Sequence record: OR545507.1
Length of the DNA stretch: 64,000 nucleotides
Direction: 5' to 3' (one strand)
A program made the translations under genes and the position numbers. Within the stretch, counting starts at the first letter, position 1, and every line of letters starts with the position of its first letter. Positions 24,341-43,235 of this stretch are shown here, piece after piece. Under the pieces are notes generated by a model, which did no database searches, was not told the DNA's origin, and saw nothing but the letters and a program-made list of their open reading frames with translations.

Positions 24341-24367
24341 TTATTGTTATCCTCTATTAAATTAATA

Positions 24368-24637: not shown

Positions 24638-24895
24638 TTATCTCATAGATCTATGCCAACAATTACGCGGGGGACGTTTAAAAGTACTATCATGATCCTC
24701 CTGGCAAGTTATGCAGTACTTACATCCCTTAACAGCCTGGCGGCGATTCTCAGGGATTTTATCGCCACAGTCGAGGCAATGTATCAGTGATTCTATTTGT
24801 GCGTTAATTTGCTTTCTAGCGTGGTTTACGGCGGCCTGAATCACTGCGTTAATCTCGTCTTGTTCGGCCCCGTCTTTCGCGAATCCTACAGCCAT
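24638..24895 (-). CDS. TraR/DksA C4-type zinc finger protein (YbiI-like)
   Basis: MAVGFAKDGAEQDEI...CLDCGDKIPENRRQAVKGCKYCITCQE. Confidence 0.9.
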   Translation of the reverse strand: MAVGFAKDGAEQDEINAVIQAAVNHARKQINAQIESLIHCLDCGDKIPENRRQAVKGCKYCITCQEDHDSTFKRPPRNCWHRSMR

Positions 24896-25092
24896 TATTT
24901 TAACCTTTTTCTATCATTAATTAATGCTTTCAGTACTATACTAATAACTTGCAATGATTCATCAATGACTATAAAATTATTTTCTTTCATTAGATGATAG
25001 TTACCATTGATATTATATTCTAACGAGTACTGTTTACGTTTAATTTTTGATAATGTTTCTATTTGTTTTTGTACTGATTTCATGCTAATCAT
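24895..25092 (-). CDS. hypothetical protein
   Basis: ORF abutting TraR gene. Confidence 0.6.
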   Translation of the reverse strand: MISMKSVQKQIETLSKIKRKQYSLEYNINGNYHLMKENNFIVIDESLQVISIVLKALINDRKRLK

Positions 25093-25713
25093 TGTTAAAC
25101 GTCCTGTAACGCATTCTAACGAGATAAACGGTTTAGTACTGGCATTGTATAGGGTAATGAATTAAAGCCCACCAGCGTTAACCAGTGGGCTATAATCTTA
25201 CATCTTGCGGATAATCTTAACAGTATCTTTCACCGATTTACCGTCTTGCTGGCATTGCTCGATCATTGCGTATTGTTCTGCGGTCAGATCCTCGCCAGTT
25301 TTTGCCAGTACTGCGTCGATGAATGAATCCAGTGCGATCATTTTATTTCTCTCTTAGGTTAAGTTAACTACTGTTTATAAAACTTATTATACAGTACTAT
25401 CAAACGTTGTCAATATATTTAATAGTACTGGTAATATATTTTAGCGGTAATCGTCGTATGCTTTATTCACCTGGCGAATGTAACTTTCAAAGGCTTCGTC
25501 TACCGTTTCATACTCCCGAACATAATCACCATAGGAAACTACATACATACCTTTTTGATCTTCAAACGTCATGATGATAGAATCCAGACCAACGATTTCA
25601 GTTTTTGCGATGATAGCCATTTTTTTAATTCCTTAGTAGTGTAGTTGATAAAACTTATTATGCCAGTACTATCAATCATTGTCAATAGCTTTGATAGTAC
25701 TGTGATAATATTT

Positions 25714-25926
25714 TTAGTTAATGATAGTCAGTGTAAAATTGTAATCACCACAGCGATATAGCACGTTATTCCCAAATGTTCCAACTAATCGCACATCACA
25801 CAAAACGCCGGTTTTTTCTTTTACTTCCTTGATACTTGTAACTCCTGTAATATCTTTATTAAAGTATTCATGATCTGAAAATAAAACTTGTTTTGCATTT
25901 TTTAATTTCGACCGGATATTAGCCAT
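25714..25926 (-). CDS. hypothetical early protein
   Basis: ORF behind promoter-stem-loop. Confidence 0.7.
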   Translation of the reverse strand: MANIRSKLKNAKQVLFSDHEYFNKDITGVTSIKEVKEKTGVLCDVRLVGTFGNNVLYRCGDYNFTLTIIN

Positions 25927-26021
25927 TTTGTTTTCTCTCTGTTAGTGGGGAGAAGTTTTTCTCCCCTTGATGTAAACTATTATACAGTACTATAATCTAT
26001 TGTCAAACTATTTTTTTTATA

Positions 26022-26363
26022 TTATTCGAAATCTTCTGGACCGGACTGATAATCATCTTCACCGTATGCACTTTCTAACTTCTCGCCAGTGTGGTCATCA
26101 GTTAGTGAGTCATCCTCATAGTTCACGTCTACGCCAGTGATGTAAAACTGGCTATCGTCTGGATCATTGAAATTAATTTTCTGTATGTTTACAATAACTG
26201 TATTGATGCCCAGGACACCGCCATCAGCCGTTACAAAGTACTGATATTTTTCACAACCGCCTGAATTGAAACCGTAATTAATTTCGGCCCGACCATCATT
26301 TAAACGCAGTGCCTGAGCGATGATTTCATTTTCAAAGTTAGATTGAGCAATTGAGATAGTCAT
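26022..26363 (-). CDS. conserved acidic phage hypothetical protein
   Basis: YFVTADGGVL...VDVNYED...ESAYGE; motif recalled from other phages. Confidence 0.75.
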   Translation of the reverse strand: MTISIAQSNFENEIIAQALRLNDGRAEINYGFNSGGCEKYQYFVTADGGVLGINTVIVNIQKINFNDPDDSQFYITGVDVNYEDDSLTDDHTGEKLESAYGEDDYQSGPEDFE

Positions 26364-26485
26364 GATTTGTTTCCTTATTACCAGGGGAAACCGTTTCCCC
26401 TTTCGATGTAAAACATTATACGCTTATTGAGATAGTTTGCAAGTACTTTTTAAAAATAGTTTTCAGTACTCAAACATTATACAAT

Positions 26486-26572
26486 AGATACACTCCTGCA
26501 CCCTGTGGGCTAGTGAGCTATCTCTCAATGAATATATAATAGCAAAATGGCTGACCGAAGTCAACCACTTTT
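26486..26572 (-). repeat. promoter-CCCANNGGGTGC element D
   Basis: GTGGTTGAC-TTCG-GTCAGCCAT hairpin/promoter; GAG-AGATAG-CTC; GCCCACAGGGTGCAGGAGTGTATCT. Confidence 0.8.
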
Positions 26573-27250
26573 TTCATTTATTTTTAGCTTTTAGAATCGC
26601 CGCCTTTCGTGTCATTCCTTGTTTGATGTACTCCTTTACTTTCGCTTTTTTAGCGTTTACCTTGTCTGCTTTCGTTTTAGGAGTACTGTAAATTATACCG
26701 TTAGGATTCATTTAAATCACCATAAAGAATAGATAGGTTACTAACAACGCCGCGATCAATGCACCGACCAGGGCCGAACTATAGTAAGCTAATGTTTTCA
26801 TTTTTTAGCCTGAAAATAATGTTTAATTTGTGCGGCGGTCAATGCACAATTACGCAGGAAGTTTTCTGTATAACTGCGGCGAGTACTGAAAGAGAATTGA
26901 CCTTTGCCGTTGCCGATAGTAACATCAAACCGAGCGTTGTATTGTTTCATTTTGATTCTCCTTGTATCAGGGGAGAACCATTTCCCCCCCCTCTATGTAA
27001 ACAATTATACAGTACTGGAAACTAATTGCAAGTACTATTTTTTAGATTTACGCAAACTTTCTACCATCTCAGGAGTAAGGCCCGGCGGGTAGGAAACCAC
27101 TTCATCCACAAAACGCAAAGGGAATACCCCAGCGAAAGGTGAACGTGCTTTCTTGTTAGTACTCTTTTTTGATGCTTTCATTTCATATTCCTTAATTAGT
27201 GGGGAGAATCATTTCTCCCCTTCATGTAAAACATTATACAGTACTGAAAA

Positions 27251-27460
27251 CTAATTGCAAGTACTATTTGAAAGTAAATGCTCATACGCTGCATTAACTA
27301 CGTTTTCAATAACCGACTGTACAGAAAGATCCCCCACGTCCCGGCTATAGTAGAAATCGCTTACAGTGGTGTCATCGTATGCAAATACTTTACCAGGTAC
27401 GGCATCAATCACATACATATTAACCTTTAAGATGTCGATCTTATCCTGTACAGTAAGCAT
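27251..27460 (-). CDS. hypothetical early protein
   Basis: ORF. Confidence 0.65.
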   Translation of the reverse strand: MLTVQDKIDILKVNMYVIDAVPGKVFAYDDTTVSDFYYSRDVGDLSVQSVIENVVNAAYEHLLSNSTCN

Positions 27461-27465
27461 ATTAA

Positions 27466-27738
27466 TTAACCTTTTAAGTACTGGCTTAAGTAGTCTTGTT
27501 GATCTTCGGTGATTGCAGCCATCTTCCCTAGTACTGGATTGATGATATAATCCCCTGTAACGTCCTGTAACGCATTCTCAGGCGGTTTAACGGCTGGGGT
27601 AGCCATAGCCATTGCCTGGACTTGTTCGACGCTGTAACGCTCATAAAGGCGGCATTCTTCCGGTGTTAACATAGCATCAGTACGCTTCATCGGTTTAATG
27701 ATGCTTTCGATCTCATTCAGTACTTGATTAACGTTCAT
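27466..27738 (-). CDS. hypothetical early protein
   Basis: ORF. Confidence 0.7.
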   Translation of the reverse strand: MNVNQVLNEIESIIKPMKRTDAMLTPEECRLYERYSVEQVQAMAMATPAVKPPENALQDVTGDYIINPVLGKMAAITEDQQDYLSQYLKG

Positions 27739-27789
27739 GGTATAATCCCCAATATAAGCGGCCTGAATCGACCGCTAACGATGTTTTGA

Positions 27790-28059
27790 TTAATAGGTGT
27801 ATGGTTGACGTTCAAACAATGATTGCACGTTGTACGCCCCACTAATGGGCTTTGCTGGTAAATCAATTTTATATTGTTCACGCTTAAAGATAATAAAACG
27901 GCAATTGTTTTTTACATCAAAATTGATTGAACGTTCCAGGAGTTTTCCATCGTGTACAAATACAAGATAACCGCTTGCTACTTGTTTTGTAGTACTGGTT
28001 GCAACCATAGACCGACGAACATGCGTACCTGCATCGATTAAAGTACTGATATTTTTCAT
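27790..28059 (-). CDS. hypothetical early protein
   Basis: ORF with GAGG RBS. Confidence 0.7.
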   Translation of the reverse strand: MKNISTLIDAGTHVRRSMVATSTTKQVASGYLVFVHDGKLLERSINFDVKNNCRFIIFKREQYKIDLPAKPISGAYNVQSLFERQPYTY

Positions 28060-28139
28060 TATACGATCCTCTTAAGTTAATTTAATTTCTTTCCCCTATG
28101 CAGACACTATATCAAAGTATCTGCATAAAGTAAAGCTAA

Positions 28140-28463
28140 TTAAAGATCTTTTTTGCGTTTAACATTCTGTACAGTACAATGCAACGGGATATTAAGATCA
28201 TTGCACACACGAGTAAGGGAGGTTTCATCAGTATTAAGCCCGTCTACTGATTCCTTTAAGAGAGATAACGCCGTTTGTTGATATGCATCTTCATAGCCAT
28301 AAGTAAATGATTCAACCGCCAGATCATTCAAACCGTTATCCAGTTCAACGCTTACATGACAAGAATGATAAGTATTGCCATATGAATCAGTCCAACGTTT
28401 ACCGTCAACATTGATTGCACGGATTGCAGCCAGGGAAACGGTGTTAATGATAGTTTTAGCCAT
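28140..28463 (-). CDS. hypothetical early protein (paralogue of 22022)
   Basis: RWTDSYGNTYHSC..FTYGY..VKRKKDL. Confidence 0.75.
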   Translation of the reverse strand: MAKTIINTVSLAAIRAINVDGKRWTDSYGNTYHSCHVSVELDNGLNDLAVESFTYGYEDAYQQTALSLLKESVDGLNTDETSLTRVCNDLNIPLHCTVQNVKRKKDL

Positions 28464-28782
28464 TTTTGTATTCCTTAAATTAATATGTTGTCTTGATAAA
28501 ATCTATTATGCCAGTACTATCAAACTATGTCAATAGTACTGTGATAATATTTTTACTTACTTTTTGCTTTCTTTGCTGCTTCCACCTGGTCGGCCCATTC
28601 TTTACCCCATACTTGTAAATTATAATGGTACTGGCAAAGAGCAACGCCCCGCTTTAAACCCGTAATAGATTTCTGACCACATTGACAAGTTTTCATTTTA
28701 GTTTCCTTGTAGTGGGGAGAACCATTTCTCCCCTTGATGTAATGTATTATACTTTATTCGATTTACTTTGCAAGTACTTTTT

Positions 28783-29010
28783 TTAATTTAATTCATCCAG
28801 GCAAAGGATACGCTCAACGCCCAAATCAGTTAAACTAATCGACGGCACTTGATAGGTTTCAATGTATGCTACACTTGCCCACTGACCGAACTCATTAACG
28901 GCCCAGGTATTCATTGCATTTTGCAATTCCGCACCTTCCTTGTTGGTAATTACAGCAACAGTAGAAGAATTACCAGTAGTACCAGATACGCGAGTGATTA
29001 CGATAGCCAT
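28783..29010 (-). CDS. hypothetical early protein
   Basis: ORF with own promoter. Confidence 0.7.
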   Translation of the reverse strand: MAIVITRVSGTTGNSSTVAVITNKEGAELQNAMNTWAVNEFGQWASVAYIETYQVPSISLTDLGVERILCLDELN

Positions 29011-29445
29011 TTTTTAATTCCTATTCAGTAGTTGATGTATGTATTATGTCAGTACTTAAAACTATTGTCAAACTATTTTTTAAAGTTTATCAATGATTGA
29101 TGCCGTTTCATTGATAGTCTTGCCGTGTTTTGCACACGCGATAACTGCTTTAAATTCCTTTGATGACCAATCTTTCTTGCTGCATACTGACATTACTTGT
29201 AAAGTAAAACAATCCAGTTCATAAGTATTCATCTTTAAATCCTCAGTTAGTTAAGGTGTCTCGCCTTGATGTAATTAATTATACGCTAATCTCTTAATCG
29301 TGCAAGTACTTTTTATTACTTTTTGCAAAATACTTTAAACGCTCTCAATCGCATTCTAACGACCTTAACTCCACCAGCTAGGGCGATGTATCAGATAATC
29401 AGTTTAATGCGTTAGGCGGTGCTAGTGGACTGGAATACTATAGAC

Positions 29446-29488
29446 ACAAAAAAGCCCACTGTTTAAGGTGGGCTAGTGATTCAGTACT
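29446..29488 (-). terminator. terminator, 43-bp direct repeat copy 1
   Basis: AGCCCAC-CTTAAACA-GTGGGCT-TTTTT; identical copy at 30182. Confidence 0.75.
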
Positions 29489-29495
29489 TTAATTT

Positions 29496-29978
29496 TTATG
29501 CTTCAACTTTGCGATGAGCTTCGATCCATTCCTCGCGAGTCATACCGCTTTCTTTGATAGCGTCCAGTACTACCGCAATGCAGTTACCGCGTACAGGAAT
29601 CAAATGTTCTTCCCCGTTATCAAGTACTACCGCTACACGTTCCTGAATCCATTTTTTAGGCTTAGATTCCGGCTTATCTTCACCATACTTAACCGCCAGG
29701 GCTTTATGTGCCATTTCCACAACCACTTCCAGATCCAATCCAGACACTGCCGCCTGAATACTTTCAATTGTTGCTTGTAGTTCTGCTTCACGGGCTTTTT
29801 TCTGTTCTTCCAGTTCTGCTACCTTTTTGGCTTGCAGTTCTTTCGCAGTACTGTACGCAATGTTAAAATTGTTGCGTACCGCTTTCATGGTATCGCTATC
29901 CAGTTCAGCCAGGATTTCTGCCGCTACGTTAGTTTCATTTGCTACCAGTGCTTTGATGAATGATTTTACATTAGCCAT
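29496..29978 (-). CDS. H-NS/StpA-like protein (divergent)
   Basis: coiled-coil N-half; C-terminal VLDNGEEHLIPVRGNCIAVVLDAIKESGMTREEW aligns by eye with H-NS [34 protein letters not shown]. Confidence 0.55.
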   Translation of the reverse strand: MANVKSFIKALVANETNVAAEILAELDSDTMKAVRNNFNIAYSTAKELQAKKVAELEEQKKAREAELQATIESIQAAVSGLDLEVVVEMAHKALAVKYGEDKPESKPKKWIQERVAVVLDNGEEHLIPVRGNCIAVVLDAIKESGMTREEWIEAHRKVEA

Positions 29979-30181
29979 TTTATAAATCCTCAATTAAAGT
30001 TTAGTTTACGTTAGATAGTGTATCAAAGTTTTCTCGACGTGTCCAGTTTTTCGTTCGACTTACTGGCGGTCTACTTAGTGCTCCCCGTCTTGATGTAATA
30101 CATTCTACGCTTTTCTGTGGTAATGTCAACTACTTTTTTAAAACTATTTTTAAAGTATCTCAGTACTACGATACTACAAAA

Positions 30182-30224
30182 ACAAAAAAGCCCACTGTTT
30201 AAGGTGGGCTAGTGATTCAGTACT
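30182..30224 (-). terminator. terminator, 43-bp direct repeat copy 2
   Basis: identical to 29446-29488. Confidence 0.75.
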
Positions 30225-30227
30225 AGA

Positions 30228-30527
30228 TTATAAACAGTTAATTACTCCGGTGTGCGTTACTTTCTCAGTATCCATAACCGTGACCGATCCACGCTTAGTA
30301 CTGGCATCATAATAAATTGTGGTGCTACCGTTTTCGTCTTCTTCATGGAACGGGCCGTTTTTAAATGCTTCCGGCTGGATCTCTAAATCCTTTAATACAA
30401 TCTCGCCAGTTCTTTCATCGGTCATTGCAACAGTGCACTGAATGAATTTTTCATTACTTACATCTAATGACGCATTAACAGCGAAAGAGGAAACAGATAA
30501 AGCCAGGGCGATGATTGCAATTTTCAT
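30228..30527 (-). CDS. predicted exported protein
   Basis: Sec-type signal MKIAIIALALSVSSFAVNA. Confidence 0.7.
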   Translation of the reverse strand: MKIAIIALALSVSSFAVNASLDVSNEKFIQCTVAMTDERTGEIVLKDLEIQPEAFKNGPFHEEDENGSTTIYYDASTKRGSVTVMDTEKVTHTGVINCL

Positions 30528-30611
30528 TTGATTATCCTTAGTTACCAGGGGGAACCGCTCCCCCTTGCTATGTAAAATATTATACAGTACTAAAAACTAA
30601 TTGCAAGTACT

Positions 30612-30848
30612 TTATGATTTTTTATAAAACATTTCGGCAGTGATATTTTTACCCGTTGGCTGTACTTTATCCAGAATTTTTTGATGCCCTGGCCGTCCAA
30701 ATGAATATGATCCGTAAACCGTAAACCAGTAGTTACCCTCAGTGTTTACATGTACAGCACAATAGGGAACGCCCCGCGATTCATCACTAGTAAAGTGTGC
30801 TACCGTTCCCGTTACATTCGAAGTCGTTGATTTGATTTGTTCAAGCAT
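30612..30848 (-). CDS. hypothetical early protein
   Basis: ORF behind promoter-stem-loop. Confidence 0.7.
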   Translation of the reverse strand: MLEQIKSTTSNVTGTVAHFTSDESRGVPYCAVHVNTEGNYWFTVYGSYSFGRPGHQKILDKVQPTGKNITAEMFYKKS

Positions 30849-30955
30849 TTTCTTATTCCTTAGTTACCAGGGGAACCGCTCCCCTATGCAAAACATTATA
30901 CGCGTTTAAAAACTAATAGCAAGTATTTTAATAAAAAGTATTTGGAAAATAATTG

Positions 30956-31030
30956 TTGACAAGTGCATCCAGTACTGGCATAATTACTACATCAAGACGA
31001 AACAGTCACTAACCCACCGGGTGCATAGAT
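30956..31030 (+). repeat. promoter-CCCANNGGGTGC element F
   Basis: TTGACA-N17-CATAAT; GAC-GAAACA-GTC hairpin; ACCCACCGGGTGCA. Confidence 0.8.
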
Positions 31031-31062
31031 CCGTCTATTAAATGATTCAGTACTGAAAAAGT

Positions 31063-31090
31063 AACGGGGAGTTATTATCTCCCCGCGTTG
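31063..31090. terminator. hairpin between convergent transcripts
   Basis: CGGGGAG-TTATTAT-CTCCCCG. Confidence 0.65.
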
Positions 31091-31312
31091 TTATTTTGTA
31101 AGGTATAAACAGAAGTCACCTTTATTTGCTACGCCGCCAGTGTAACGCGATGAATAGTTAGAAATATCTTGTACTTCTGCTATTACCAGTGTATCATCAT
31201 TCATTTCGTCGCAGAAGCAAACGGCTGGATCTTTTACGCCGATATTGTCGGCATGTTCCCGCATAGATTTAACCAGTGCTTCCAGTTGAGAAAGAGTAGT
31301 GATATTAGCCAT
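31091..31312 (-). CDS. hypothetical early protein
   Basis: start MANITT after promoter-stem-loop. Confidence 0.7.
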   Translation of the reverse strand: MANITTLSQLEALVKSMREHADNIGVKDPAVCFCDEMNDDTLVIAEVQDISNYSSRYTGGVANKGDFCLYLTK

Positions 31313-31398
31313 TGTATTTTCCTCATTACCAGGGAGAACCATTTCTCCCCTCTATGTAAACTATTATACAGTACTGAAAACTAATTGCAAGTACTTTT

Positions 31399-31602
31399 TT
31401 AATTTAATTGCTTTAAAACATACTCAAAGACACCACGCACATCATTGATCATCGCCTGGCGGTTAGCAGGTAACGCATCAGGATCGCCACTATCCCAGGC
31501 ATTGATAAAACTCCCCAAATCATGATAGATTTTATTCTGTAAGCCGATTAACTGTAATTCTTTTTCTTCAAGCTCTTTGATGCGGTCGATTAAATCACTC
31601 AT
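31399..31602 (-). CDS. hypothetical early protein
   Basis: start MSDLIDR. Confidence 0.65.
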   Translation of the reverse strand: MSDLIDRIKELEEKELQLIGLQNKIYHDLGSFINAWDSGDPDALPANRQAMINDVRGVFEYVLKQLN

Positions 31603-31619
31603 TAGATAATCCTCAGTAC

Positions 31620-31904
31620 TTAACTGTAAGATCCGCAACGGTCGCAGTAGTGCCCGTCCTCGTCATCGTCAACGAATTGACCGACGAAATGATCTACTTT
31701 CGCTTTCAGGTTATTATAATCGTTTTCTACTTCATTTAAACGCTTCTGGTAGTATTCCAGTGCTTTAAGATATGCCGCATCAGCAGTTTTCTCCTGCATA
31801 GCTAAATTCATGCCACGCGTTTCATCGTACAGCCAAAAACCATCGGTGCACTGGCTAATAGATAATGACTTGCTTAGTACTGTATAGTTAATTACTTTAC
31901 CCAT
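31620..31904 (-). CDS. hypothetical early protein
   Basis: ORF; C-terminal CxxC. Confidence 0.7.
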   Translation of the reverse strand: MGKVINYTVLSKSLSISQCTDGFWLYDETRGMNLAMQEKTADAAYLKALEYYQKRLNEVENDYNNLKAKVDHFVGQFVDDDEDGHYCDRCGSYS

Positions 31905-31996
31905 TAGATAATCCTCAGTAAAGGCGGGAACTATTCCCCGCCTCGATATAAAGTATTATACGTTAATCTAACTACAATGCAAGTACTTTTTAAATT

Positions 31997-32263
31997 TTAT
32001 AATCCTTTTACTGCATCAGGTGCGACTACTCCATCAATGTATTGAACATCGTTTTCAACTTCACGGGCGGCATCATTCAGCAGATCAAAATTAAATTCCA
32101 TTTCTTCCAGATCATCGAAATCAGGCTCATAACCATTAATTGTTGAATAAGTCCAAGTACCTTTTTCATAAGTTACGACACTTACATCAGGGAAGAAATC
32201 TTGCACATGATCCATCGCATCCCGAACCAATTGATGTGCAGTTGTGATATTTAAAGTTTTCAT
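31997..32263 (-). CDS. acidic hypothetical early protein
   Basis: ORF behind promoter-stem-loop. Confidence 0.7.
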   Translation of the reverse strand: MKTLNITTAHQLVRDAMDHVQDFFPDVSVVTYEKGTWTYSTINGYEPDFDDLEEMEFNFDLLNDAAREVENDVQYIDGVVAPDAVKGL

Positions 32264-32356
32264 TTTGTTGCCCTTTTAGTGTGAGCGGGGAACCACTCCC
32301 CGCCTCGATGTAAAGTATTATACGCTTTTAAACTTAGTTTGCAAGTACTTTTTAAA

Positions 32357-32968
32357 TTAATATGCGATTGATTCTACTACGTCATCAATAACATTGAATT
32401 GATATTCGTTACCCTCAATCAGTGCCGTAATGTTTTCAGTAGTGAATTGATCCTCATATGCATTCTCTAAATCACGGTACAACTTGCGGGATAATTCACG
32501 AATAGTTTCAGTGAGTAGTTCCTCAAGCTCATTAACTAACGTTTCTTGTTTTGCGGTTAAATCAGTGTAAGCCGATTCAATGTACCCGCTTACAGTATTC
32601 TCATGCGAGTAGTGGGAGTGAGAACGCTTTACACTCATCGCCAAATCATCTTCATTCAGCAGGTGACGGATTGAGCGATACTTAGTTAATGCTCTTACCT
32701 TGCGTAAAAACTTCACTGCGTCAACGTGGTCAGTACTGATTGATGCACCGTCACCCTGGGACCAAAAACCACTGAATTGTATTTCAGCTTCATTAATGCC
32801 ATATTCCGGTAGTACTGTTTCTTTATAGTATTCAATTTCACTTTCAGAAAAATAATTGTCGTTTGAGTTTTTTTCACGTTCCCGAACCAGTTCGATAGCT
32901 GACGTTTTTTGTTCTGCGTTCAATTCAGAAAAATCCATAACGAAAGTAGTAGTAGTGATAGTTTTCAT
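32357..32968 (-). CDS. SGFWSQGDG-motif protein (family often labelled antitoxin-like in mobile elements)
   Basis: DFSELNAEQK...IQFSGFWSQGDGAS; family label recalled, not verified. Confidence 0.6.
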   Translation of the reverse strand: MKTITTTTFVMDFSELNAEQKTSAIELVREREKNSNDNYFSESEIEYYKETVLPEYGINEAEIQFSGFWSQGDGASISTDHVDAVKFLRKVRALTKYRSIRHLLNEDDLAMSVKRSHSHYSHENTVSGYIESAYTDLTAKQETLVNELEELLTETIRELSRKLYRDLENAYEDQFTTENITALIEGNEYQFNVIDDVVESIAY

Positions 32969-33036
32969 TTTGTAACCCTCATTCAGTAGTTGATGTAAGT
33001 ATTATACGCTTTTAAAAACATTTGTCAAACTATTTT

Positions 33037-33116
33037 ATCAGGGGAGTTTTTCGTGTGCCTTACTCCTGGGCTACTTAACGGGAAGTTACTTATTTCGTTC
33101 CCCGTCCTGATGTAAA
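33037..33116 (-). ncRNA. candidate structured small RNA, copy 2
   Basis: as 23049; stem variants keep pairing. Confidence 0.5.
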
Positions 33117-33191
33117 ACATTATACGCCTTTAAACATAGTTTGCAAGTACTTTTTAAAAATAGTTTTCAGTACTGAATATTTAAAAAAGTA

Positions 33192-33255
33192 TTGACAGCA
33201 TTATCAAGTACTGGCATAATATACCCCATGACAACAGCTAACCCACCGGGTGCAC
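33192..33255 (+). repeat. promoter-CCCANNGGGTGC element G
   Basis: TTGACA-N17-CATAAT; ACCCACCGGGTGCA; converges on E. Confidence 0.8.
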
Positions 33256-33286
33256 AATTGTAACTATACTAAACTACTTTTTCTAT

Positions 33287-33364
33287 AGATACACTCCCGC
33301 ACCCTATGGGCTACGGCTTATCTGCCAATGAATACATTATGCCAGTACTGACAAAATAAGTCAA
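33287..33364 (-). repeat. promoter-CCCANNGGGTGC element E
   Basis: TTGACT-N17-CATAAT; GGC-AGATAA-GCC; GCCCATAGGGTGCGGGAGTGTATCT. Confidence 0.8.
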
Positions 33365-33394
33365 TACCGGCAATTGTAAAGATTTGTAAACTGC

Positions 33395-33625
33395 TTATAC
33401 TGCAATCGCGTCCAGGCTATAATAATAATAAGTGCCGTATTGGTGTACTTTATTACCTTTTATTTCAGTACTGAATGAATCCGAACGGTTTGCATATGAT
33501 GTTAATTTAAAGTACTTTGATTTGCTGATACGTTGCCATACACCGCAGATCCGCTGTAAGTAAGTAGTTTTATTCGTGGTAGTATCTTTTACAGTTTTAA
33601 CTTCAGTCATATACATATTAGTCAT
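33395..33625 (-). CDS. hypothetical early protein
   Basis: ORF behind promoter-stem-loop. Confidence 0.7.
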   Translation of the reverse strand: MTNMYMTEVKTVKDTTTNKTTYLQRICGVWQRISKSKYFKLTSYANRSDSFSTEIKGNKVHQYGTYYYYSLDAIAV

Positions 33626-33712
33626 TTTTATTACTCCAGGTTATAGGCGGGAAGAGTTCCCGCTCTCGATGTAAAACATTATACGCCATTAAACATAGTT
33701 TGCAAGTACTTT

Positions 33713-33979
33713 TTATTCAAGTACTGCAATCTTTTTAGTACGGTACACGGTCACGCGGTTGCCCTTTCGGTCGAGCTTTATTTCTACCACTCGACGCGAT
33801 ACACTATCAGGACTTTTCAACGCCGCTAACCAGTACTGTAATGATCTGGCGGTACTACGCTTTATAATGGCCCAACGTTTACCACGTTCCGATTGTACGC
33901 CCATATCTTTAAACGTTGCCCCGTCCTGGCGTGCGGCGATCCGAGCTTGTTCACGCGTCGCAAAATACTTAATATTCAT
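33713..33979 (-). CDS. hypothetical early protein (paralogue of 21531)
   Basis: YFATREQARIAAR..FKDMG..RWA..DRKGNRVTV. Confidence 0.75.
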   Translation of the reverse strand: MNIKYFATREQARIAARQDGATFKDMGVQSERGKRWAIIKRSTARSLQYWLAALKSPDSVSRRVVEIKLDRKGNRVTVYRTKKIAVLE

Positions 33980-34064
33980 GCTGTTGCCCTTATCGTTGGT
34001 GTATGAATAAAACACTATTATAAAGTACTATCGCAAAAAATGATAGTACTTTAAATAAATTCTA

Positions 34065-34304
34065 TTACATTCCAACCATTGCAGCACGGATCGCAGTAGT
34101 GCTATATTTGAATCCGTCCGGCGTTTTATCTTGTCCAGTCTGTTCTAAAAATAACATCATATGACGGGCCGCATCATTACGATTAGTATTGGCGGCAATA
34201 AAGTCCTGGGCCAACCGGTATAATGATTCATCGTTATTAATCCAAAGGCTTACATTCCAATGAGTTTTGTTTTTGTGACCTAAGAACATTTTTGATTTAG
34301 CCAT
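34065..34304 (-). CDS. conserved phage hypothetical protein
   Basis: GHKNKTHWNVSLWINNDE...TPDG..YS...IRAAM; motif recalled from other phages. Confidence 0.75.
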   Translation of the reverse strand: MAKSKMFLGHKNKTHWNVSLWINNDESLYRLAQDFIAANTNRNDAARHMMLFLEQTGQDKTPDGFKYSTTAIRAAMVGM

Positions 34305-34397
34305 TTTTTTAATCCTCTTATATAGTGGGGAACTATTCCCCACCTGATGTAAAACATTATACGCTTTTAAACATAGTTTGCAAGTACTTTATTAAAC

Positions 34398-34760
34398 TTA
34401 TTCGTAAATTTTGCCACTGTCAGCCCATACCAGGAAACGAGGCATATTATCCCATGCATCTTGTTTTAAATTTAAACCGTGTAATACTTCTGTACTTTCC
34501 ATTCCTGGTACTGGTTTACTATACACCGCGAAATTTTCGCCCATATACTGATAAACCATCGTCAAATCACTGGCGATCATCTTATGGATCATCGCATCAA
34601 GCATCACGGTAGCGGCGTATTGTTCACGCTTAAGCGGCAACATTGTAATAAGTTCCCGATAAGCTGAAATGTGAATTTTTACCGTTTCAGCCGGAAGACC
34701 TTTCATCTCTTCACGGAAGTTGACCAGGTTAGAAATAATTTTATTGATTTGGGTCGCCAT
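34398..34760 (-). CDS. hypothetical early protein (first gene of the early run)
   Basis: start MATQINK after promoter-stem-loop. Confidence 0.7.
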   Translation of the reverse strand: MATQINKIISNLVNFREEMKGLPAETVKIHISAYRELITMLPLKREQYAATVMLDAMIHKMIASDLTMVYQYMGENFAVYSKPVPGMESTEVLHGLNLKQDAWDNMPRFLVWADSGKIYE

Positions 34761-35079
34761 CGTATTAATCTCTTTTAAAGTGTAGCGGGAAGTGTTCCCG
34801 CTCTCGATGTAAAACATTATACGCCTTTAAACATAGTTTGCAAGTACTTTCTACATGTACTTTTAAAATAGTTTTCTTTCTATATAGGGGAACTATCATT
34901 CAGTACTATTATTCAGTACTGAATCAACCAAATCACTACTACACCCCATAAAACGGCCTCAGACGCATTCTAACGCATTAATACACCTAAGCTATACATT
35001 TGCACCATTCCAATCATTCCAGGGCTTTACGGGCCGTTTAAACGCGTTAAATTATTTTCAATTATTTTGTTTTTAGCTA

Positions 35080-35167
35080 TTGACTCAGTACAGAAAAAGC
35101 GTATAATTACTACATAGACGCGAGAAAGCGGAAACCCCAGAGGGTGCGGAATTACGCCCAAAATTCA
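35080..35167 (+). repeat. promoter-CCCANNGGGTGC element H
   Basis: TTGACT-N16-TATAAT; CGC-GAGAAA-GCG; CCCCAGAGGGTGCGG. Confidence 0.8.
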
Positions 35168-35180
35168 AGATATAAAAAAA

Positions 35181-35262
35181 GGATACACTCCCGCACCCTA
35201 GCAGGTAAACGCACTTTCTCAGTACTGAAATATAGTACCATAGTCCGGCCCAGGATAGCAAG
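35181..35262 (-). repeat. promoter-GGGTGC element I (degenerate left arm)
   Basis: CTAGGGTGCGGGAGTGTATCC; TACTAT -10 upstream; converges on H. Confidence 0.7.
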
Positions 35263-35295
35263 CAAATTAATTAAAACTTTTTTGCTTCCAGGGTA

Positions 35296-35382
35296 TTGCT
35301 TTATTTTTTCAGTACTGTATAATAGTTCCATCAAGTCGAGAAAGACTCAAGCCCACCGGGTGCATAGTTACGCCCAAAATTC
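35296..35382 (+). repeat. promoter-CCCANNGGGTGC element J
   Basis: TTGCTT-N16-TATAAT; GTC-GAGAAA-GAC; GCCCACCGGGTGCA. Confidence 0.8.
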
Positions 35383-36710
35383 AGTACTGAAAAAATTTTT
35401 AAAAATATCCGTCCAGGCCGTTGACATTGCCCCCAGTTTATAAGATAATGATTCCAGATTCAGAAAAATCTAACTCCAGATACTGCGGGGAAACTATCCC
35501 CACGCGGTAGGGGAACTATTGGAAAAAACAAAATAAAATTTTGATTTAGCCGTCTATACTTCCAGACGTGTAACCATCTAGCCGTTTAGCCGTCCAAACG
35601 TCTAGCCATCCAGAAATCTAGCCGTCTAGATGGATAGCCATCTTTACTTCCAGACTTCTGGAGGGCTAGACATATCTACGCCCAAAATCCATCCAGGGTA
35701 ACTACACCCAAAATCCGTCAGTACTATACCATAGATCTATCTTTTGAAAGGGAGTATTCAGTACTGCCATCATAGCCCTCACTATGTTACCCTAGGAGGA
35801 TGAAGACCATCATGTAGTACTGAATACTGTTAGAGGGAATCCACCAGCACAAGCTGGTGGTATAATGCTTTAGATTAAAATCAGTACTGACACCATTCTG
35901 TTAATATCAGTACTGTTATTACGATTTTCATATGAGGTTCAAAAAGATGTACCACCACAGGAGGAACTATCTTTTCTGTACTGTCTCACGACAGGAGGTA
36001 GAGTAAATGAATTGTTCGCAGCAACTCATCACCCCTTGAAGCTATGTAGAACATTATACAGTACTGAATCATAATGTCAATAGCTTTCTTTCATTATTCA
36101 GTACTGATATTCTTGAGAACTACCCGACTACAAACATCATTATATCCCACAAATCATAAACGTCCCAACGTAAATTTCAACTTTCGAAGATCCAACTTTT
36201 ATTTCATAGGTACTCCAAAATTTTTAGGATCGAGATTTAGGATGGAGTACTAACCAACTTTTTGCTGGAGCCTCAAGGGGTAATTGAATTTTACCCCGAA
36301 GGGTAAAAGGGTAATTGTAATTAAGGTGAAAGTAATAATTCAGTACTAATCATTGCGTGATTACTTTTGATTACATTTGATGTAATTTGCAAAATGGAAA
36401 AGGAGCTTGGAAACTACAAAGTACGGCAGACTTCCTCTGCCTACTTAGTGGCATATCAGTACTGAATCATTCACACACATTTCCGTGCATTCTTGTCTAT
36501 ACTAATCAGTACTGAATCATATATAATCATTCTGTGATTCTACGGTGCTCATATAAATGTTTATATATGATTACTTATGACTACCTATGATTACGGGGTT
36601 TAGCCTGGGGAGAATCCTAGTGATCGCATTTGTCCAGGCTGAATTTTAACATATGCAACATATGTTAAAGCCTGTATAATGCTTCCACTACGGAGCTTCC
36701 CCTAGCTATA

Positions 36711-36902
36711 TTACTTCCTATATATAATCATTAAGATATAGTAGTACTGATTATACTGTACATTCTCTTTAATATTATAAGGGTCTATAGCAATCTCGGT
36801 ACATCTATTAAATGCATATCTATTAAATGCCAGTGGAATTATAGATCTAATCCATACTTGTTCATTTTCTTTTAGTTTACTTATATAGAAGTTTTTATAC
36901 AT
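36711..36902 (-). CDS. MHKEYY-family small protein
   Basis: MYKNFY...YYYILMIIYRK. Confidence 0.75.
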   Translation of the reverse strand: MYKNFYISKLKENEQVWIRSIIPLAFNRYAFNRCTEIAIDPYNIKENVQYNQYYYILMIIYRK

Positions 36903-36917
36903 AGTATTCTCTATTAA

Positions 36918-37100
36918 TTAATATGATAGTACTAGTGTTAGTACTGAGCACAATTGTTCTTTGTAGTTCTTAGGGTATATAGAATCTTTTATGCACTCAT
37001 TGAAGTGCCATAGGTATAATCTTGGGTCGCATTCTTTATATATTCTTACGGGGACGAATGTTAGTTTTCTTATATAGAATTCTTTATGTTCTTTATTCAT
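36918..37100 (-). CDS. MHKEYY-family small protein
   Basis: HKEFYI...VLTLVLSY. Confidence 0.75.
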   Translation of the reverse strand: MNKEHKEFYIRKLTFVPVRIYKECDPRLYLWHFNECIKDSIYPKNYKEQLCSVLTLVLSY

Positions 37101-37105
37101 ATTAG

Positions 37106-37291
37106 TTAGTGTCTGTATATAAGTAATAGTAAGAATACGTACTGCACATCTTCATCTTTAGTATTGAGTACTGTACGTATTGCGTCATGGAACAAGAATA
37201 TAGTACTTGGGTCATGAAAATTTAAAGGGGTTCTGGGTACGGCATGTTTGTAGTTCCCTTTAACAAATTGTGTGTAGTATTCTCTATGCAT
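37106..37291 (-). CDS. MHKEYY-family small protein
   Basis: MHREYY...YVFLLLIYRH. Confidence 0.75.
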   Translation of the reverse strand: MHREYYTQFVKGNYKHAVPRTPLNFHDPSTIFLFHDAIRTVLNTKDEDVQYVFLLLLIYRH

Positions 37292-37292
37292 A

Positions 37293-37478
37293 TTAGTACC
37301 TATATATTAGGGCGAGAATGTAGTACAATTCATATGGAATGTAATTTGGGGTGATCGCACACTGTGTATGGTAAATGAATTGTTCGGTATTTTTCTTATC
37401 CTTGATATCTATTGGGATTAGTGGTATAAGCATTTGGGAGTTTAGATCCAGATGGCTTAAGTAGAATTCTTTATGCAT
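37293..37478 (-). CDS. MHKEYY-family small protein
   Basis: MHKEFY...YYILALIYRY. Confidence 0.75.
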   Translation of the reverse strand: MHKEFYLSHLDLNSQMLIPLIPIDIKDKKNTEQFIYHTQCAITPNYIPYELYYILALIYRY

Positions 37479-37487
37479 ATTGTTCTC

Positions 37488-37676
37488 TTAGAATACGAAA
37501 GCTAGGTACAGGGTATGATACAGTACTCGATGGTAGCTGTCAAAATCTAGTATACATGCTTTAGTGCACATAGTAAAATACACTTTATCATTTTGTGCAT
37601 TGATACCGCGAGGTTTATCTAATAGATTAGTTCTGAGGTACATTGGGAAATATTTTGTGTAGTATTCTTTATGCAT
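37488..37676 (-). CDS. MHKEYY-family small protein
   Basis: MHKEYY...YHTLYLAFVF. Confidence 0.75.
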   Translation of the reverse strand: MHKEYYTKYFPMYLRTNLLDKPRGINAQNDKVYFTMCTKACILDFDSYHRVLYHTLYLAFVF

Positions 37677-37677
37677 G

Positions 37678-37860
37678 TTAGTACCTGAATATAAGTAGGA
37701 TAGTGTTATATAGCTGGTCATAACTACTACTATTTTCTATACTTCGTTCTATGCAGTTATTGAATCCCAGTACTGCCAAATCGTTATCCAGAGGGACTTT
37801 ATATCTGGCGTAGTGTACAAAAATGCTGGGGAGAAATTGTGTGTAGTATTCTTTGTGCAT
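37678..37860 (-). CDS. MHKEYY-family small protein
   Basis: MHKEYY...YNTILLIFRY. Confidence 0.75.
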   Translation of the reverse strand: MHKEYYTQFLPSIFVHYARYKVPLDNDLAVLGFNNCIERSIENSSSYDQLYNTILLIFRY

Positions 37861-37861
37861 A

Positions 37862-38053
37862 TTAGTACCTATATATTAGTAAAAGGATGTGATACAGTAC
37901 TCGATTATAGTCTTCAATATATATCGAGGATTTAGTGCACTGAATGAAGTAGTCTTTTTCGTAGTTTTTTTCTATACCCAATGGTTCTGTTGGTACAAGG
38001 TGTTGGAGATACATTGGGAGTTTCTCTATGTAGTATTCTTTGTGGTTATTCAT
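37862..38053 (-). CDS. MHKEYY-family small protein
   Basis: HKEYYI...YHILLLIYRY. Confidence 0.75.
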   Translation of the reverse strand: MNNHKEYYIEKLPMYLQHLVPTEPLGIEKNYEKDYFIQCTKSSIYIEDYNRVLYHILLLIYRY

Positions 38054-38054
38054 A

Positions 38055-38237
38055 TTAGTACCTGAATGTTAGCATTACTACGTAGTACAGCATATATGGA
38101 TTATCATCGTATATGAGCGTGTACTTAGTACATTGTTGGAACATTATCTTTGCGTGATCTTTTATTCCTATTGGTTCTGTTGGTATATGGTGCTGGAGAT
38201 GCATAGGGATTTTATCCCTGTAGTATTCTTTGTGCAT
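38055..38237 (-). CDS. MHKEYY-family small protein
   Basis: MHKEYY...YYVVMLTFRY. Confidence 0.75.
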   Translation of the reverse strand: MHKEYYRDKIPMHLQHHIPTEPIGIKDHAKIMFQQCTKYTLIYDDNPYMLYYVVMLTFRY

Positions 38238-38247
38238 GTTGTTCTCT

Positions 38248-38430
38248 TTAGTACTTATATATTAGGAGTAAAATGTTATAGTACTGGTTCATTGCGTCAT
38301 CATTTTCTATAGCACGTTTTACGCTATTCATGTAGTTAGATCGAGCGGCACGAGTTATGAGAAGAACTTTGTATGCAGCAAAGTATTTTTGCTGCACGGG
38401 TAGTTTAGAGATATAGTATTCTTTATACAT
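38248..38430 (-). CDS. MHKEYY-family small protein
   Basis: MYKEYY...YNILLLIYKY. Confidence 0.75.
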   Translation of the reverse strand: MYKEYYISKLPVQQKYFAAYKVLLITRAARSNYMNSVKRAIENDDAMNQYYNILLLIYKY

Positions 38431-40770: not shown

Positions 40771-40816
40771 GTTTTCTTTATGGGGTAAATATGATATAAT
40801 GAATAAGGAGGGATTT

Positions 40817-41953
40817 ATGTTACCTTTTGTTAGAATGTTAAATTATGGGAACGTAGCACCAGAAAAACTAAAAGTTCGTGATATTGTTGCAGGTGCTAAT
40901 TCATTATTACTAATAACCGAGGATAATGAATTATGGGTGCGTGGTAATAATTCGTATGGCAAATTAGGTATAGGAACTGATACTATAGTGAATGTAACCG
41001 AGTGGACTAAAGTTAGAGATGATGTTAAGTTTGCTTGTGCTAGTAATTTAGTATGCGTTGTATTAACTGTAGATAATAAAATTTTCTACTGTGGTGATGA
41101 ATGGTTTGAATCTGGTGGTTCGACAAGTTCTAAAGTTGTTACATGGAAAGATGTTACGACACAATTTAGTGCAGTGAATCTAAGCACAGTACGTGAAATG
41201 AAAATGACTTCTTATTGTGTAGGATTACTTACAAATGATAATAGATTATATGCTAAAGGATATGATAATAACCAATCATTTGGTGGTTCAACAAGCAAAG
41301 TTAATGCTGTATTAGTTGCGTCAAATGTTTCAAAATTCTACACTTCTCTATCTGGTACTATATATTCTAGTACTACTGGTGGTTACTACCGCTGTGGTAT
41401 AAGCAATACTGGAGCATTGGGTACTAGCACAAATTTAACTTCTTATAATTTGTACTCTGCTCCCGAATTTGCATCCGAATGTGCAGTTGGTATGTCAACA
41501 TTAAACTCTGGTATATTATATTATGATACTAATGGTAGCACTAGATATGTTATAGCAGGTCAAAATAGATATTATCAACTAGGTAATTCTTCTTCAAATA
41601 CCACAAACGTATATTCGTATACAGAATTAACCGGATATAGAGGCAGGTTTAGGGATTTGTGGAGTGATATGAATAACTCTGTTCTTTCTTTTGCTATAAG
41701 CACAGATGGCAATACTTTATATTATGCTGGTACTAACACTACACTATCTTCTGGTGACCCTGGTGTTGAATATTCATCTACATTTAAAGAAGTACCACAC
41801 GGGTTTAATGATATAACAAAGGCGGCATCGTTAGCCTATCTATCTATAGTGCAAGATTCAACGGGATGGTATTATTCTGGAAATGCAACTACGTTATATG
41901 GTTTGCCATCGAGTGATGAATTTATACCATTACCATTACCAACAATAATTTAA
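40817..41953 (+). CDS. MLPF-leader RCC1/BLIP-II-like beta-propeller protein 1 (putative virion fibre/appendage protein)
   Basis: MLPFVRMLNYGNVAP; G-N-YGKLG-G repeats. Confidence 0.8.
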   Translation: MLPFVRMLNYGNVAPEKLKVRDIVAGANSLLLITEDNELWVRGNNSYGKLGIGTDTIVNVTEWTKVRDDVKFACASNLVCVVLTVDNKIFYCGDEWFESGGSTSSKVVTWKDVTTQFSAVNLSTVREMKMTSYCVGLLTNDNRLYAKGYDNNQSFGGSTSKVNAVLVASNVSKFYTSLSGTIYSSTTGGYYRCGISNTGALGTSTNLTSYNLYSAPEFASECAVGMSTLNSGILYYDTNGSTRYVIAGQNRYYQLGNSSSNTTNVYSYTELTGYRGRFRDLWSDMNNSVLSFAISTDGNTLYYAGTNTTLSSGDPGVEYSSTFKEVPHGFNDITKAASLAYLSIVQDSTGWYYSGNATTLYGLPSSDEFIPLPLPTII

Positions 41954-42024
41954 ATACAGGCCAGTACTTGATACTGGCTTTTCTTTTTTGTATTAAATAT
42001 AGTATAATGAATAAGGAGGGAAAT

Positions 42025-43227
42025 ATGTTACCTTTTGGAAGAATGGTTAAGTACGCAAATATTGCACCAGGTCCAGAACCTGTAGAGTTCTCAGATGTTT
42101 TACAACAACATTATACAAACTGTATGTATCTCCATAACCCAACTAATACTTTATATGGTTATGGTAGTAATAACTTTTACCAATTTGGTCTTGGGAATTC
42201 AGCAGCAGTTTCGTCATTTACAGTACTTGCAAGGAACTGTGCAGCCTTTTGGCTTGGTGTTCAAGGTTCATTGATGATTGATTTGGATAATAAAATATAC
42301 TACACTGGGTCGGTTGGTGCATTTTCTGATTATGGAGATGCAACACCTGTTAATGGTTATTTGACAACATGGACTGATGTTACTGTTGCATTTAATAAAA
42401 TAGGTGTTATGGCTAATATGATCAAGAGTGTATATATAGGTGAAAGTACTAGAATATTATTAACCGATGGTAGAGTAATTGCGTGTGGAAGAAATACTAA
42501 TGGTGAATGTGGCTCTGGTAATAAAAATTCCATCCCTACACTCACAGTTATGACTAATATGGGTGAAGTTACACATATGGCATGTTCATTACAAGGAACG
42601 CACTATATCAAATCAAATAAAGATGCATGGTTTTGTGGTAAGGATAACTTTGGTGAAAGTGGATGTGGTGGTAGTTTTGTTGTATATTTGAACAAATTCG
42701 TGATTAGTAATGTAGAACATATTAGTACTACATACGATGTTACTTGGTGGTTTACTACTGGTGGGCCTGTATATTATAGCGGGGCTAACAGTTCTGGACA
42801 AGCTGGTAATGGTACGACTACATCGGTAAATCAGCTAACACCAATTAGGAACACATCGGTCACGGTTGATGTAAGTAAGTACAGTACTTTTATTTGTCCA
42901 AGTAATATGGGAAATGCATCAATTGGTGCACCTATGGCACAATACGCACCATATGTTAGAAGTAGTGGTGCTAACTCATATGGTCAAGAAGGTAATGGAA
43001 CTAATACATTAGTTAGAACTTGGAATATTTTTAATCTTAGTGCAATAAGTGGTGGTTATGACAATGTTCTTATGGCATCTAAAGATTGGAGCAGAACCAT
43101 AATAATTACTAAAGATTATAAATTATATGCATGTGGTGGCTGGAATGGTAGTGGTGGTAGATTACCTGATGGCACTTATAGTATTACTACACTAACATTA
43201 ATGCCAACGCAGTTATGGCAACAATAG
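42025..43227 (+). CDS. MLPF-leader beta-propeller protein 2
   Basis: MLPFGRMVKYANIAP; GRNTNGECG, GANSYGQEG repeats. Confidence 0.8.
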   Translation: MLPFGRMVKYANIAPGPEPVEFSDVLQQHYTNCMYLHNPTNTLYGYGSNNFYQFGLGNSAAVSSFTVLARNCAAFWLGVQGSLMIDLDNKIYYTGSVGAFSDYGDATPVNGYLTTWTDVTVAFNKIGVMANMIKSVYIGESTRILLTDGRVIACGRNTNGECGSGNKNSIPTLTVMTNMGEVTHMACSLQGTHYIKSNKDAWFCGKDNFGESGCGGSFVVYLNKFVISNVEHISTTYDVTWWFTTGGPVYYSGANSSGQAGNGTTTSVNQLTPIRNTSVTVDVSKYSTFICPSNMGNASIGAPMAQYAPYVRSSGANSYGQEGNGTNTLVRTWNIFNLSAISGGYDNVLMASKDWSRTIIITKDYKLYACGGWNGSGGRLPDGTYSITTLTLMPTQLWQQ

Positions 43228-43235
43228 GAGGGAAT

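Follow-up and report, generated by a model that had tools for sequence, protein, structure and literature searches.

Paired and solitary copies of a predicted two-hairpin RNA module in the terminal repeat of Rak2-like jumbo phages

The two facing pairs and their position in the genome

The sequence examined here is a stretch of 64,000 nucleotides (nt) from record OR545507.1 (hereafter the window, numbered from its first letter), and the elements in question are two facing pairs of a GGGTGC hexamer at 33,192 to 35,262. The source is Escherichia phage Sharanji (OR545507), an Asteriusvirus and Rak2-like jumbo phage, to which window positions 32000-37000 are 100% identical at the same coordinates; the same segment is also 100% identical to the Asteriusvirus vB_EcoM_G17. 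In the first pair, GGGTGC on the plus strand at 33248-33253 (element G) faces GCACCC at 33299-33304 (element E). In the second, GGGTGC on the plus strand at 35142-35147 (element H) faces GCACCC at 35193-35198 (element I). Pair G/E lies within the 425-bp gap separating gp097 and gp098, and pair H/I within a 1.9-kb non-coding stretch (34818-36710). The Sharanji and G17 records carry no annotation at either pair.

Both pairs fall within the terminal repeat. The Sharanji genome paper reports a direct terminal repeat of 20,668 bp, and the physical left end of the close relative fEgEco12 has been set by PhageTerm and restriction digests (PMC13070987). That end maps to about window position 36461, and the G17 record, in which both repeat copies are present, begins at about 15778. 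The terminal repeat of ~20.7 kb therefore occupies the window from ~15.5/15.8 to 36.5 kb, and small early genes are located there. Pair H/I is consequently 1.26-1.32 kb from the physical genome end and pair G/E ~3.2 kb from it. In CBB, XbC2, Munch, Muenster and fENko-Kae01 a homologue of H/I is likewise close to the start of the record, at a distance of ~1.0-1.3 kb, and Salmonella and Klebsiella jumbo phages show 94-96% identity over positions 35100-35151.

The first-pass annotation of the window had drawn attention to the pairs because the hexamers are separated in both by an A/T-rich gap of exactly 45 nt whose sequence diverges outside a conserved tail. The coordinates, the gap lengths and the composition were all verified, and the window contains two instances of the pattern GGGTGC-N45-GCACCC, which was absent from all of 100 dinucleotide-preserving shuffles. 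The hexamer alone was not enriched (15 found, 10.3 expected), and the non-random part is its context. An exact 12-nt core (e.g. CCCACCGGGTGC, 33242-33253) is common to nine copies, the tenth copy, I, being a variant. Comparison of the copies places each hexamer in a two-hairpin RNA module of ~47 nt, where it forms the 5' arm of the second hairpin and does not vary.

A two-hairpin RNA module

A covariance model of 47 positions was built from 21 copies that align without gaps, with relatives drawn from annotated phage records and IMG/VR. An unfiltered search of the window with this model returned nine copies at an expectation value (E) of 0.006 or lower, element I at E 0.12 and a next match at E 0.71. 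All ten copies lie within 17179-35378, inside the terminal repeat. Six are on the minus strand, with the first G of the core at 17199, 19946, 23220, 26503, 33304 (E) and 35198 (I), and four on the plus strand, at 31019, 33248 (G), 35142 (H) and 35358. Six of the ten are solitary, and the functional unit is therefore the single module and not the pair.

The distribution in relatives is similar. The complete 352-kb genome of ECO103 4-12-1 contains the same ten copies within one 19-kb stretch and nothing else of note, and the model recovered 97 copies at E < 0.01 across 19 Rak2-like phage loci. Every copy in Muenster and CBB is inside the annotated terminal repeat, with none in the next 7.5-10 kb, and the copies of Munch and XbC2 are likewise clustered at the genome start.

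The module consists, in order, of hairpin 1, a conserved single-stranded linker, the 12-nt core and hairpin 2. Hairpin 1 has a stem of 3-5 bp of free sequence and a purine-rich loop of 6-7 nt. In the model-fitted alignment, 36-45 cells per pair of this stem had changed on both sides, and 92% of cells were paired. The stem was also recovered by an alignment-free test, in which a copy's own arms paired fully in 44% of copies and in 9% when arms were swapped between copies; the same-copy level was reached by none of 2000 permutations (38 distinct arms). The loops of the best hairpins in this alignment-free search were most often GCGAAA (15 times), GAGAAA (9) and AGAACAA (7). Loops of the AGATAA type are also common, and in copies carrying them the search often chose a competing AT-rich hairpin.

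In hairpin 2, GGGTG pairs with a tail whose variation consists only of pairing-preserving transitions. A plain MAFFT alignment gave U-A 46 times and U-G 32 times for one pair, and G-U 55 times and G-C 23 times for a second, with no unpaired cell at either; six cells carried a swap from C-G to G-C. As such a G-U-rich stem cannot form on the opposite strand or as DNA, selection has therefore acted on the RNA of the promoter strand. Judged by these comparisons, the modules form a strand-specific RNA family confined to the terminal repeat, and the identity of the family is well supported. A third fold, in which the hairpin-1 loop and 3' arm pair with the hairpin 2 tail (RNAfold, two solitary copies), was rejected; the loop and tail types do not co-vary and the z-scores are weak.

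The pattern of variation also bears on whether the gaps and cores are simply parts of small protein-coding genes, such as 121Q gene 270 or WPEC3 coding sequences (CDSs) 72-73. Open reading frames (ORFs) of 58-99 amino acids (aa) do overlap H/I, and some relatives have annotations of short CDSs covering the pairs. The overlapping ORFs, however, have no PHROG or Pfam match, most records, including those of Sharanji and G17, are unannotated here, stop codons occur in all frames across the leader of the family copies, and the variation is compensatory in the stems and not codon-like. A coding explanation is barely credible on this evidence.

Promoters, orientation and terminators

A sigma70-type promoter is predicted at each copy in the window, matching 8-11 of the 12 consensus positions and ending 27-34 nt before the hexamer. 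Among 93 distinct copies from relatives, 86% had at least 10 of 12 consensus positions, compared with 2.5% of shuffles, and the -10 hexamer stood at a single fixed offset in 66 of the 93. With this offset, the predicted start site is ~2 nt upstream of the module's first hairpin.

In pair G/E, the promoter of G (33192-33220, plus strand; TTGACA-17-CATAAT, 11/12) has a predicted start at ~33227. Module G (33227-33265, plus strand, directed toward the genome end) has a shortened leader and a degenerate hairpin 1, followed by the core at 33242-33253 and hairpin 2 to 33265; its covariance match spans 33233-33268 on the same strand (21.6 bits, E 0.006). The promoter of E (33336-33364, minus strand; TTGACT-17-CATAAT, 10/12) would start transcription at ~33329. 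Module E (33287-33329, minus strand) is gene-directed, with hairpin 1 formed by GGC, the loop AGATAA and GCC, the core at 33310-33299 and hairpin 2 to 33287; its minus-strand match at 33329-33284 scores 49 bits (E 4.5e-9).

In pair H/I, the promoter of H (35080-35107, plus strand; TTGACT-16-TATAAT, 11/12) has a predicted start at ~35114. Module H (35114-35159, plus strand) is directed toward the genome end and has hairpin 1 formed by CGC, the loop GAGAAA and GCG, the core at 35136-35147 and hairpin 2 to 35159 (match 35116-35162, plus strand, 29.1 bits). Module I (35170-35225, minus strand) has a variant core reaching 35193, and its hairpin 2 (35199-35180) is followed by seven U and is terminator-like, giving a predicted RNA of ~55 nt; the covariance match is partial (35200-35181, minus strand, E 0.12). 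The site upstream of I (35232-35261, minus strand; TTGCTA-18-TACTAT, 8/12) is a weak, promoter-like one.

Four of the solitary copies in the window are gene-directed, all on the minus strand: 26486-26564 (57.3 bits), in which the -35 hexamer is inside a terminator-like hairpin, and, each with its promoter, 23203-23276 (34 bits), 19929-20007 (63.5 bits) and 17182-17255 (33.1 bits). The other two are on the plus strand. One, with its promoter, occupies 35296-35378, points toward the genome end and is 216 nt downstream of H (match 35332-35378, 42.5 bits). The other, at 30956-31095, runs against the genes and comprises a promoter (30956-30984), the module (30993-31039) and an intrinsic terminator (31065-31085).

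Orientation and termination are related across the family. Among neighbours less than 400 nt apart, 20 were convergent, one was tandem and none was divergent; in G/E and in H/I an end-directed module faces a gene-directed one. At five loci in which the gene strand is known, a terminator followed within 140 nt in none of 25 gene-directed solitary copies and, under a strict rule, in four of seven opposed ones. Two further opposed copies have clear terminator hairpins, at 31065-31085 in the window and at 3327 in Munch; within the window, the opposed copy at 31019 is terminator-ended and that at 35358 is not. Opposed solitary copies that end in terminators thus have the form of self-contained small-RNA genes of ~100 nt, and the element at 30956-31095 is, on its predicted promoter and terminator, one such gene.

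The facing pairs differ from these. A terminator scan found no standard terminator in either partner of the facing pairs, except the hairpin 2 and seven U of I. The predicted facing start sites are 102 bp apart in G/E and 111 bp apart in H/I, and the predicted transcripts overlap. Transcripts predicted to read through a pair fold into long hairpins (z -4.4 to -5.6), as their arms are homologous modules that are inverted relative to each other; solitary copies fold weakly (z -0.6 to -1.5).

G+C hairpins that include the -35 hexamer and are followed by a T run were also observed on the minus strand, upstream of the four gene-directed solitary modules (~17227-17275, 19979-20025, 23248-23295 and 26536-26580), as combined terminator/promoter structures.

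This arrangement could suggest a cis-acting leader of the nut/put type, in which the module loads a factor onto, or modifies, RNA polymerase and so permits read-through of early-region terminators. The module begins where the transcript is predicted to start, the short stem and purine-rich loop of hairpin 1 may resemble boxB, and gene-directed solitary copies head gene blocks with a terminator hairpin before each; the 25 such copies are followed by genes and by terminators that could be read through. Most gene-opposed solitary copies, however, precede no gene and are followed by strong terminators, no Rfam family is matched, and no antiterminator protein was identified. A role as such a leader is quite unlikely.

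Spacing of the facing pairs in related phages

Each 45-nt gap is composed of the 12-nt 3' half of hairpin 2 of one module, a 21-nt A/T spacer and the 12-nt 3' half of hairpin 2 of the other (12 + 21 + 12; 33254-33298 in G/E and 35148-35192 in H/I). The distance between promoters is not fixed, being 116 bp in G/E and 125 bp in H/I between the -10 ends, whereas the gap is constant, and the constraint therefore sits between the cores.

The first-pass annotation had proposed that conservation of the 45-nt spacing be checked in related genomes, and it was found to be conserved across genera while the spacer sequence changes. Both pairs have a gap of 45 nt in vB_Ec-M-J, ECO103 4-12-1, 121Q, A4, ph0011, TH47, WPEC3 and EJP2, eight further Asteriusvirus genomes in which the length is kept despite substitutions in the tail and spacer. 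The sole exception in the genus is the H/I gap of 42 nt in CMSTMSU, an unverified record. Pectobacterium phage CBB has three pairs at 45 nt with spacers that are unrelated in sequence; the same gap is found in XbC2, in GAP32 and in a number of IMG/VR contigs, and 16 distinct units were obtained. A gap of 45 nt is thus shared by Asteriusvirus and the Mimasvirus group. The length is not free to vary, yet it is not universal: Munch-, Muenster- and related phages have gaps of 56 nt (four units), 63 nt (four units) and 67 nt (one unit). In these longer gaps the added bases form an operator-like A/T palindrome of ~13-26 bp (e.g. Munch 1015-1077 and 7415-7470; Muenster 1287-1342 and 2398-2464), which is not present in the window and which may resemble the iron-regulator class of operators.

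Two candidate causes of the spacing were rejected. A shared central AGTACT palindrome was seen in no more than ~5 of the 16 units, and not in the middle of every one; solitary copies have AGTACT at distances of 7 to 17 nt. Selection on a long-range helix between GGGTGC and GCACCC was also discarded, as the flanking positions of partner copies are no more alike than those of the whole family.

The spacing can also be read as a sign of recognition at the DNA level, in which the 12-nt core, alone or in addition to its role in RNA, would be a site for a phage or host protein, such as a shut-off repressor bound ~25-35 bp downstream of early starts, with the inverted sites of a pair bound cooperatively on one face of the helix. 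The gap is fixed across genera while the spacer sequence changes; across 78 distinct copies the core (CCC, A, GGGTGC) shows little or no variation, and its pairing partner varies. The hexamer centres are 51 bp apart, the 56- and 67-nt classes add 11 and 22 bp, or about one and two helical turns, and the DNA inserted in the longer-gap relatives is itself operator-like. The 63-nt class, with its four units, is nevertheless out of helical phase, solitary copies form the majority, the core is truly palindromic only in CCC/GGG, and no candidate binding protein was identified. The transition-only, G-U-tolerant pattern and the compensatory changes in hairpin 1 moreover show RNA selection. A DNA site of this kind is a minority possibility, and we regard it as unlikely. 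The bipartite site that the first-pass annotation had drawn from the fixed spacing fares in a similar way: a spacing constraint does exist across genera, but the elements are, on the evidence of their folding and predicted promoters, the cores of transcribed modules each with a promoter of its own. The recombination or processing site named there as an alternative is, as regards processing, compatible with an RNA.

Relation to replication origins and genome ends

The same annotation had offered a bidirectional origin, and it is possible to picture each pair as one, with the facing promoters making primers or opening an A/T-rich unwinding element for synthesis in both directions. Strong promoters are predicted on both sides of the 21-nt spacer, which is A/T-rich, though short. 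Pair H/I, 1.26-1.32 kb from the physical end, also shares its 1.9-kb non-coding region with a 16/32-nt periodic array, and near 36-37 kb the sign of the GC skew is reversed. The pairs themselves showed no feature peculiar to an origin. This repeat has two pairs and CBB three, G/E is between two ordinary small genes, and the module also occurs alone six times, with the opposed solitary copies mostly ended by terminators after ~100 nt (five or six of seven, five loci). Neither pair contains iterons, repeat families or initiator boxes, the nearest periodic array being ~350 bp from H/I, and transcription across the spacer would be convergent. Convergent transcription generates positive superhelical stress, and overwinds rather than unwinds the intervening DNA. 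That the pairs are origins is highly improbable.

The GC skew was rejected as an origin mark, as its sign change (from -0.1 to +0.17 at ~36000-38000) coincides with the boundary of the terminal repeat, ~1.3 kb from H/I and 3.2 kb from G/E. Positive skew spans 36-40 kb despite minus-strand ORFs, and matches a plus-strand gene block only from ~40.8 kb. The terminal non-coding region, rather than the H/I pair, would be the place for functions related to the end.

Several neighbouring signals were observed in and near this region. The 16/32-nt periodic array is at 35547-35642, between H/I and the genome end, with a similar array at the matching place in CBB (715-805), and it is a candidate packaging or end-related signal. 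The E. coli Chi octamer, GCTGGTGG, has 13 copies where 0.58 would be expected; the terminal repeat contains ten of them, nine on the minus strand (17140-35860). Two inverted copies (35841-35848, minus strand; 35853-35860, plus strand) are 4 nt apart and form a hairpin ~0.6 kb from the physical end. This inverted Chi pair may protect the ends from RecBCD.

Comparison with known systems

The closest described kind of element is the PeSL (promoter-early stem-loop) cassette of T4-type phages, which combines a strong early promoter of sigma70 consensus with a stem-loop (PMC2839356, PMC4122927). The module shares with these cassettes the sigma70-consensus promoter and its repeated occurrence among small genes of unknown function. 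A terminator-type hairpin that encloses the -35 hexamer and precedes a T run was present at the gene-directed solitary copies, four in number, and absent at G, E, H and I. The module differs in being a conserved, transcribed two-hairpin RNA with an invariant 12-nt core, in its confinement to the terminal repeat, and in its occurrence in both orientations and in facing pairs at fixed distance; PeSLs have not been described with a conserved transcribed RNA, with such confinement or with facing pairs.

Cis-antisense units transcribed from facing promoters include P22 Pant/Psar with sar RNA, coliphage 186 pR/pL and ColE1 RNA I/RNA II. The pairs resemble these in that the predicted promoters face each other ~100-120 bp apart, the transcripts would overlap and one partner (I) is predicted to be short and terminator-ended. 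Unlike them, the pairs have the same folded 5' module in both partners and the unit is repeated within one genome. A regulated target was sought in the overlap of the pairs, and no credible ORF, ribosome-binding site, primer or switch gene was found there.

Promoter-proximal RNA elements that act on RNA polymerase include lambda nut/boxB, HK022 put and the rrn leader boxes. Like these, the module is directly downstream of early promoters and presents a small hairpin with a purine-rich loop and then a conserved single-stranded stretch; it differs in having no sequence or Rfam match to them and in having copies that precede no gene and then meet terminators. Origins that are RNA-primed or depend on a promoter, such as T4 oriF/oriG and the T7 primary origin, likewise have a promoter adjoining an A/T-rich stretch, but here the promoters are convergent, the sites multiple, the module also solitary and the pair devoid of an initiator-site array.

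Rfam gave no match at the gathering score or at E ≤ 5, and identity with tRNA or tmRNA was rejected, as ARAGORN found no such gene in the window. A blastn search of 5,426 E. coli genomes with a 71-nt module, for a host homologue or long complementary target, gave nothing at E ≤ 10. A 17-base pattern had 40 matches in 185,579 species genomes, none in Enterobacterales and none a full-length match to the model. Eight G+C-rich IMG/VR contigs (58-61% G+C) that match the pair pattern do not belong to the family, having no match to the covariance model; they were seen to carry unrelated palindrome arrays containing the same 12-mer, which are probably operator arrays. The element is not described in the Sharanji, CBB, fEgEco12 and G17 genome papers, nor was it found by a keyword search of the literature.

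Proposed role of the module

On balance, the explanation that we consider somewhat the most probable is that the modules are a multi-copy, promoter-driven family of structured RNAs of the terminal repeat, and that the pairs are small-RNA genes placed tail to tail that confine each other's transcripts. Host RNA polymerase would fire from the module promoters once the repeat enters the cell. Gene-directed modules would then form the 5' ends of early transcripts, and gene-opposed modules would be stand-alone small RNAs, stopped by an intrinsic terminator when solitary or by the facing gene-directed module when paired. The two transcripts of a pair would be complementary to each other; RNA I probably terminates in the spacer, and any RNA that read through a pair would fold into a long hairpin. 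The pair may thereby confine both transcripts, as a boundary or a cis-antisense unit, and would yield sense and antisense small RNAs. Foremost among the candidate functions of the module are stabilising or tagging early RNAs at their 5' end and serving as a multi-copy decoy for a host factor.

A number of observations weigh against this explanation. The 12-nt core is far more invariant than base pairing demands, and its CCC...GGG can form a small alternative hairpin that excludes hairpin 2, with no covariation signal either way; a further constraint, at the protein or DNA level, is therefore likely. A two-hairpin RNA covers 24 of the 45 nt of the gap and does not predict a spacer that is free in sequence yet exactly 21 nt long. 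Element G has a degenerate hairpin 1 and the promoter of I is weak (8/12). The promoters, start sites and RNA ends are all predictions, and because the copies are paralogous and related, the covariation statistics overstate their independence.

A more specific proposal, which we offer tentatively and consider doubtful as a whole, is that the modules are a new class of multi-copy early phage small RNA. Approximately twenty strong promoters per genome (ten per repeat) would be active in the first minutes of infection, and a host factor conserved in Enterobacterales would be titrated or mimicked by the invariant single-stranded linker and the core, for host take-over or counter-defence, with the facing pairs adding a layer of sense/antisense control.

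Other repeated elements of the window

The palindrome AGTACT was observed 253 times in the window, against 21.5 +/- 4.5 expected, and often as CAGTACTG. Its sites are found in promoter spacers, just before the -35 hexamer of a second class of promoter, and a few bases past most modules (e.g. 33207-33212, 33344-33349, 35221-35226 and 35383-35388). The palindrome probably serves as a binding site or contributes to a promoter signal.

A second repeated cassette, on the minus strand (families D1-D3; 8-11 copies, 30088-36090), is distinct from the module family. Its TTGCAA-16-TATAAT promoter has AGTAC in front of it, and downstream come a 5' leader containing a G+C hairpin and a gene, as at 33105-33158 and 34802-34855. 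Two apparent paralogue arrays were also seen: a run of twelve ORFs of 245-443 aa on the plus strand (40799-54854), ten of them 376-443 aa long, and tandem ORFs of ~60 aa with repeated DNA (D6, D9-D13) on the minus strand (36711-38300).

Significance

Rak2-like jumbo phages are widespread and are candidates for therapy, and their early programme is almost unknown. The module family is a marker of transcripts that are probably the earliest to arise from the terminal repeat. With ~100 instances, strong covariation and a simple architecture, it provides a concrete handle for the mapping of RNA ends and for structural work. The pairs also illustrate that an apparent signal of DNA spacing can arise from two RNA genes placed tail to tail, with the remaining puzzle that the 21-nt spacer is constant across genera while its sequence drifts. 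If the module does act as a decoy for a host factor, it would represent a new RNA-based mechanism of take-over or counter-defence.

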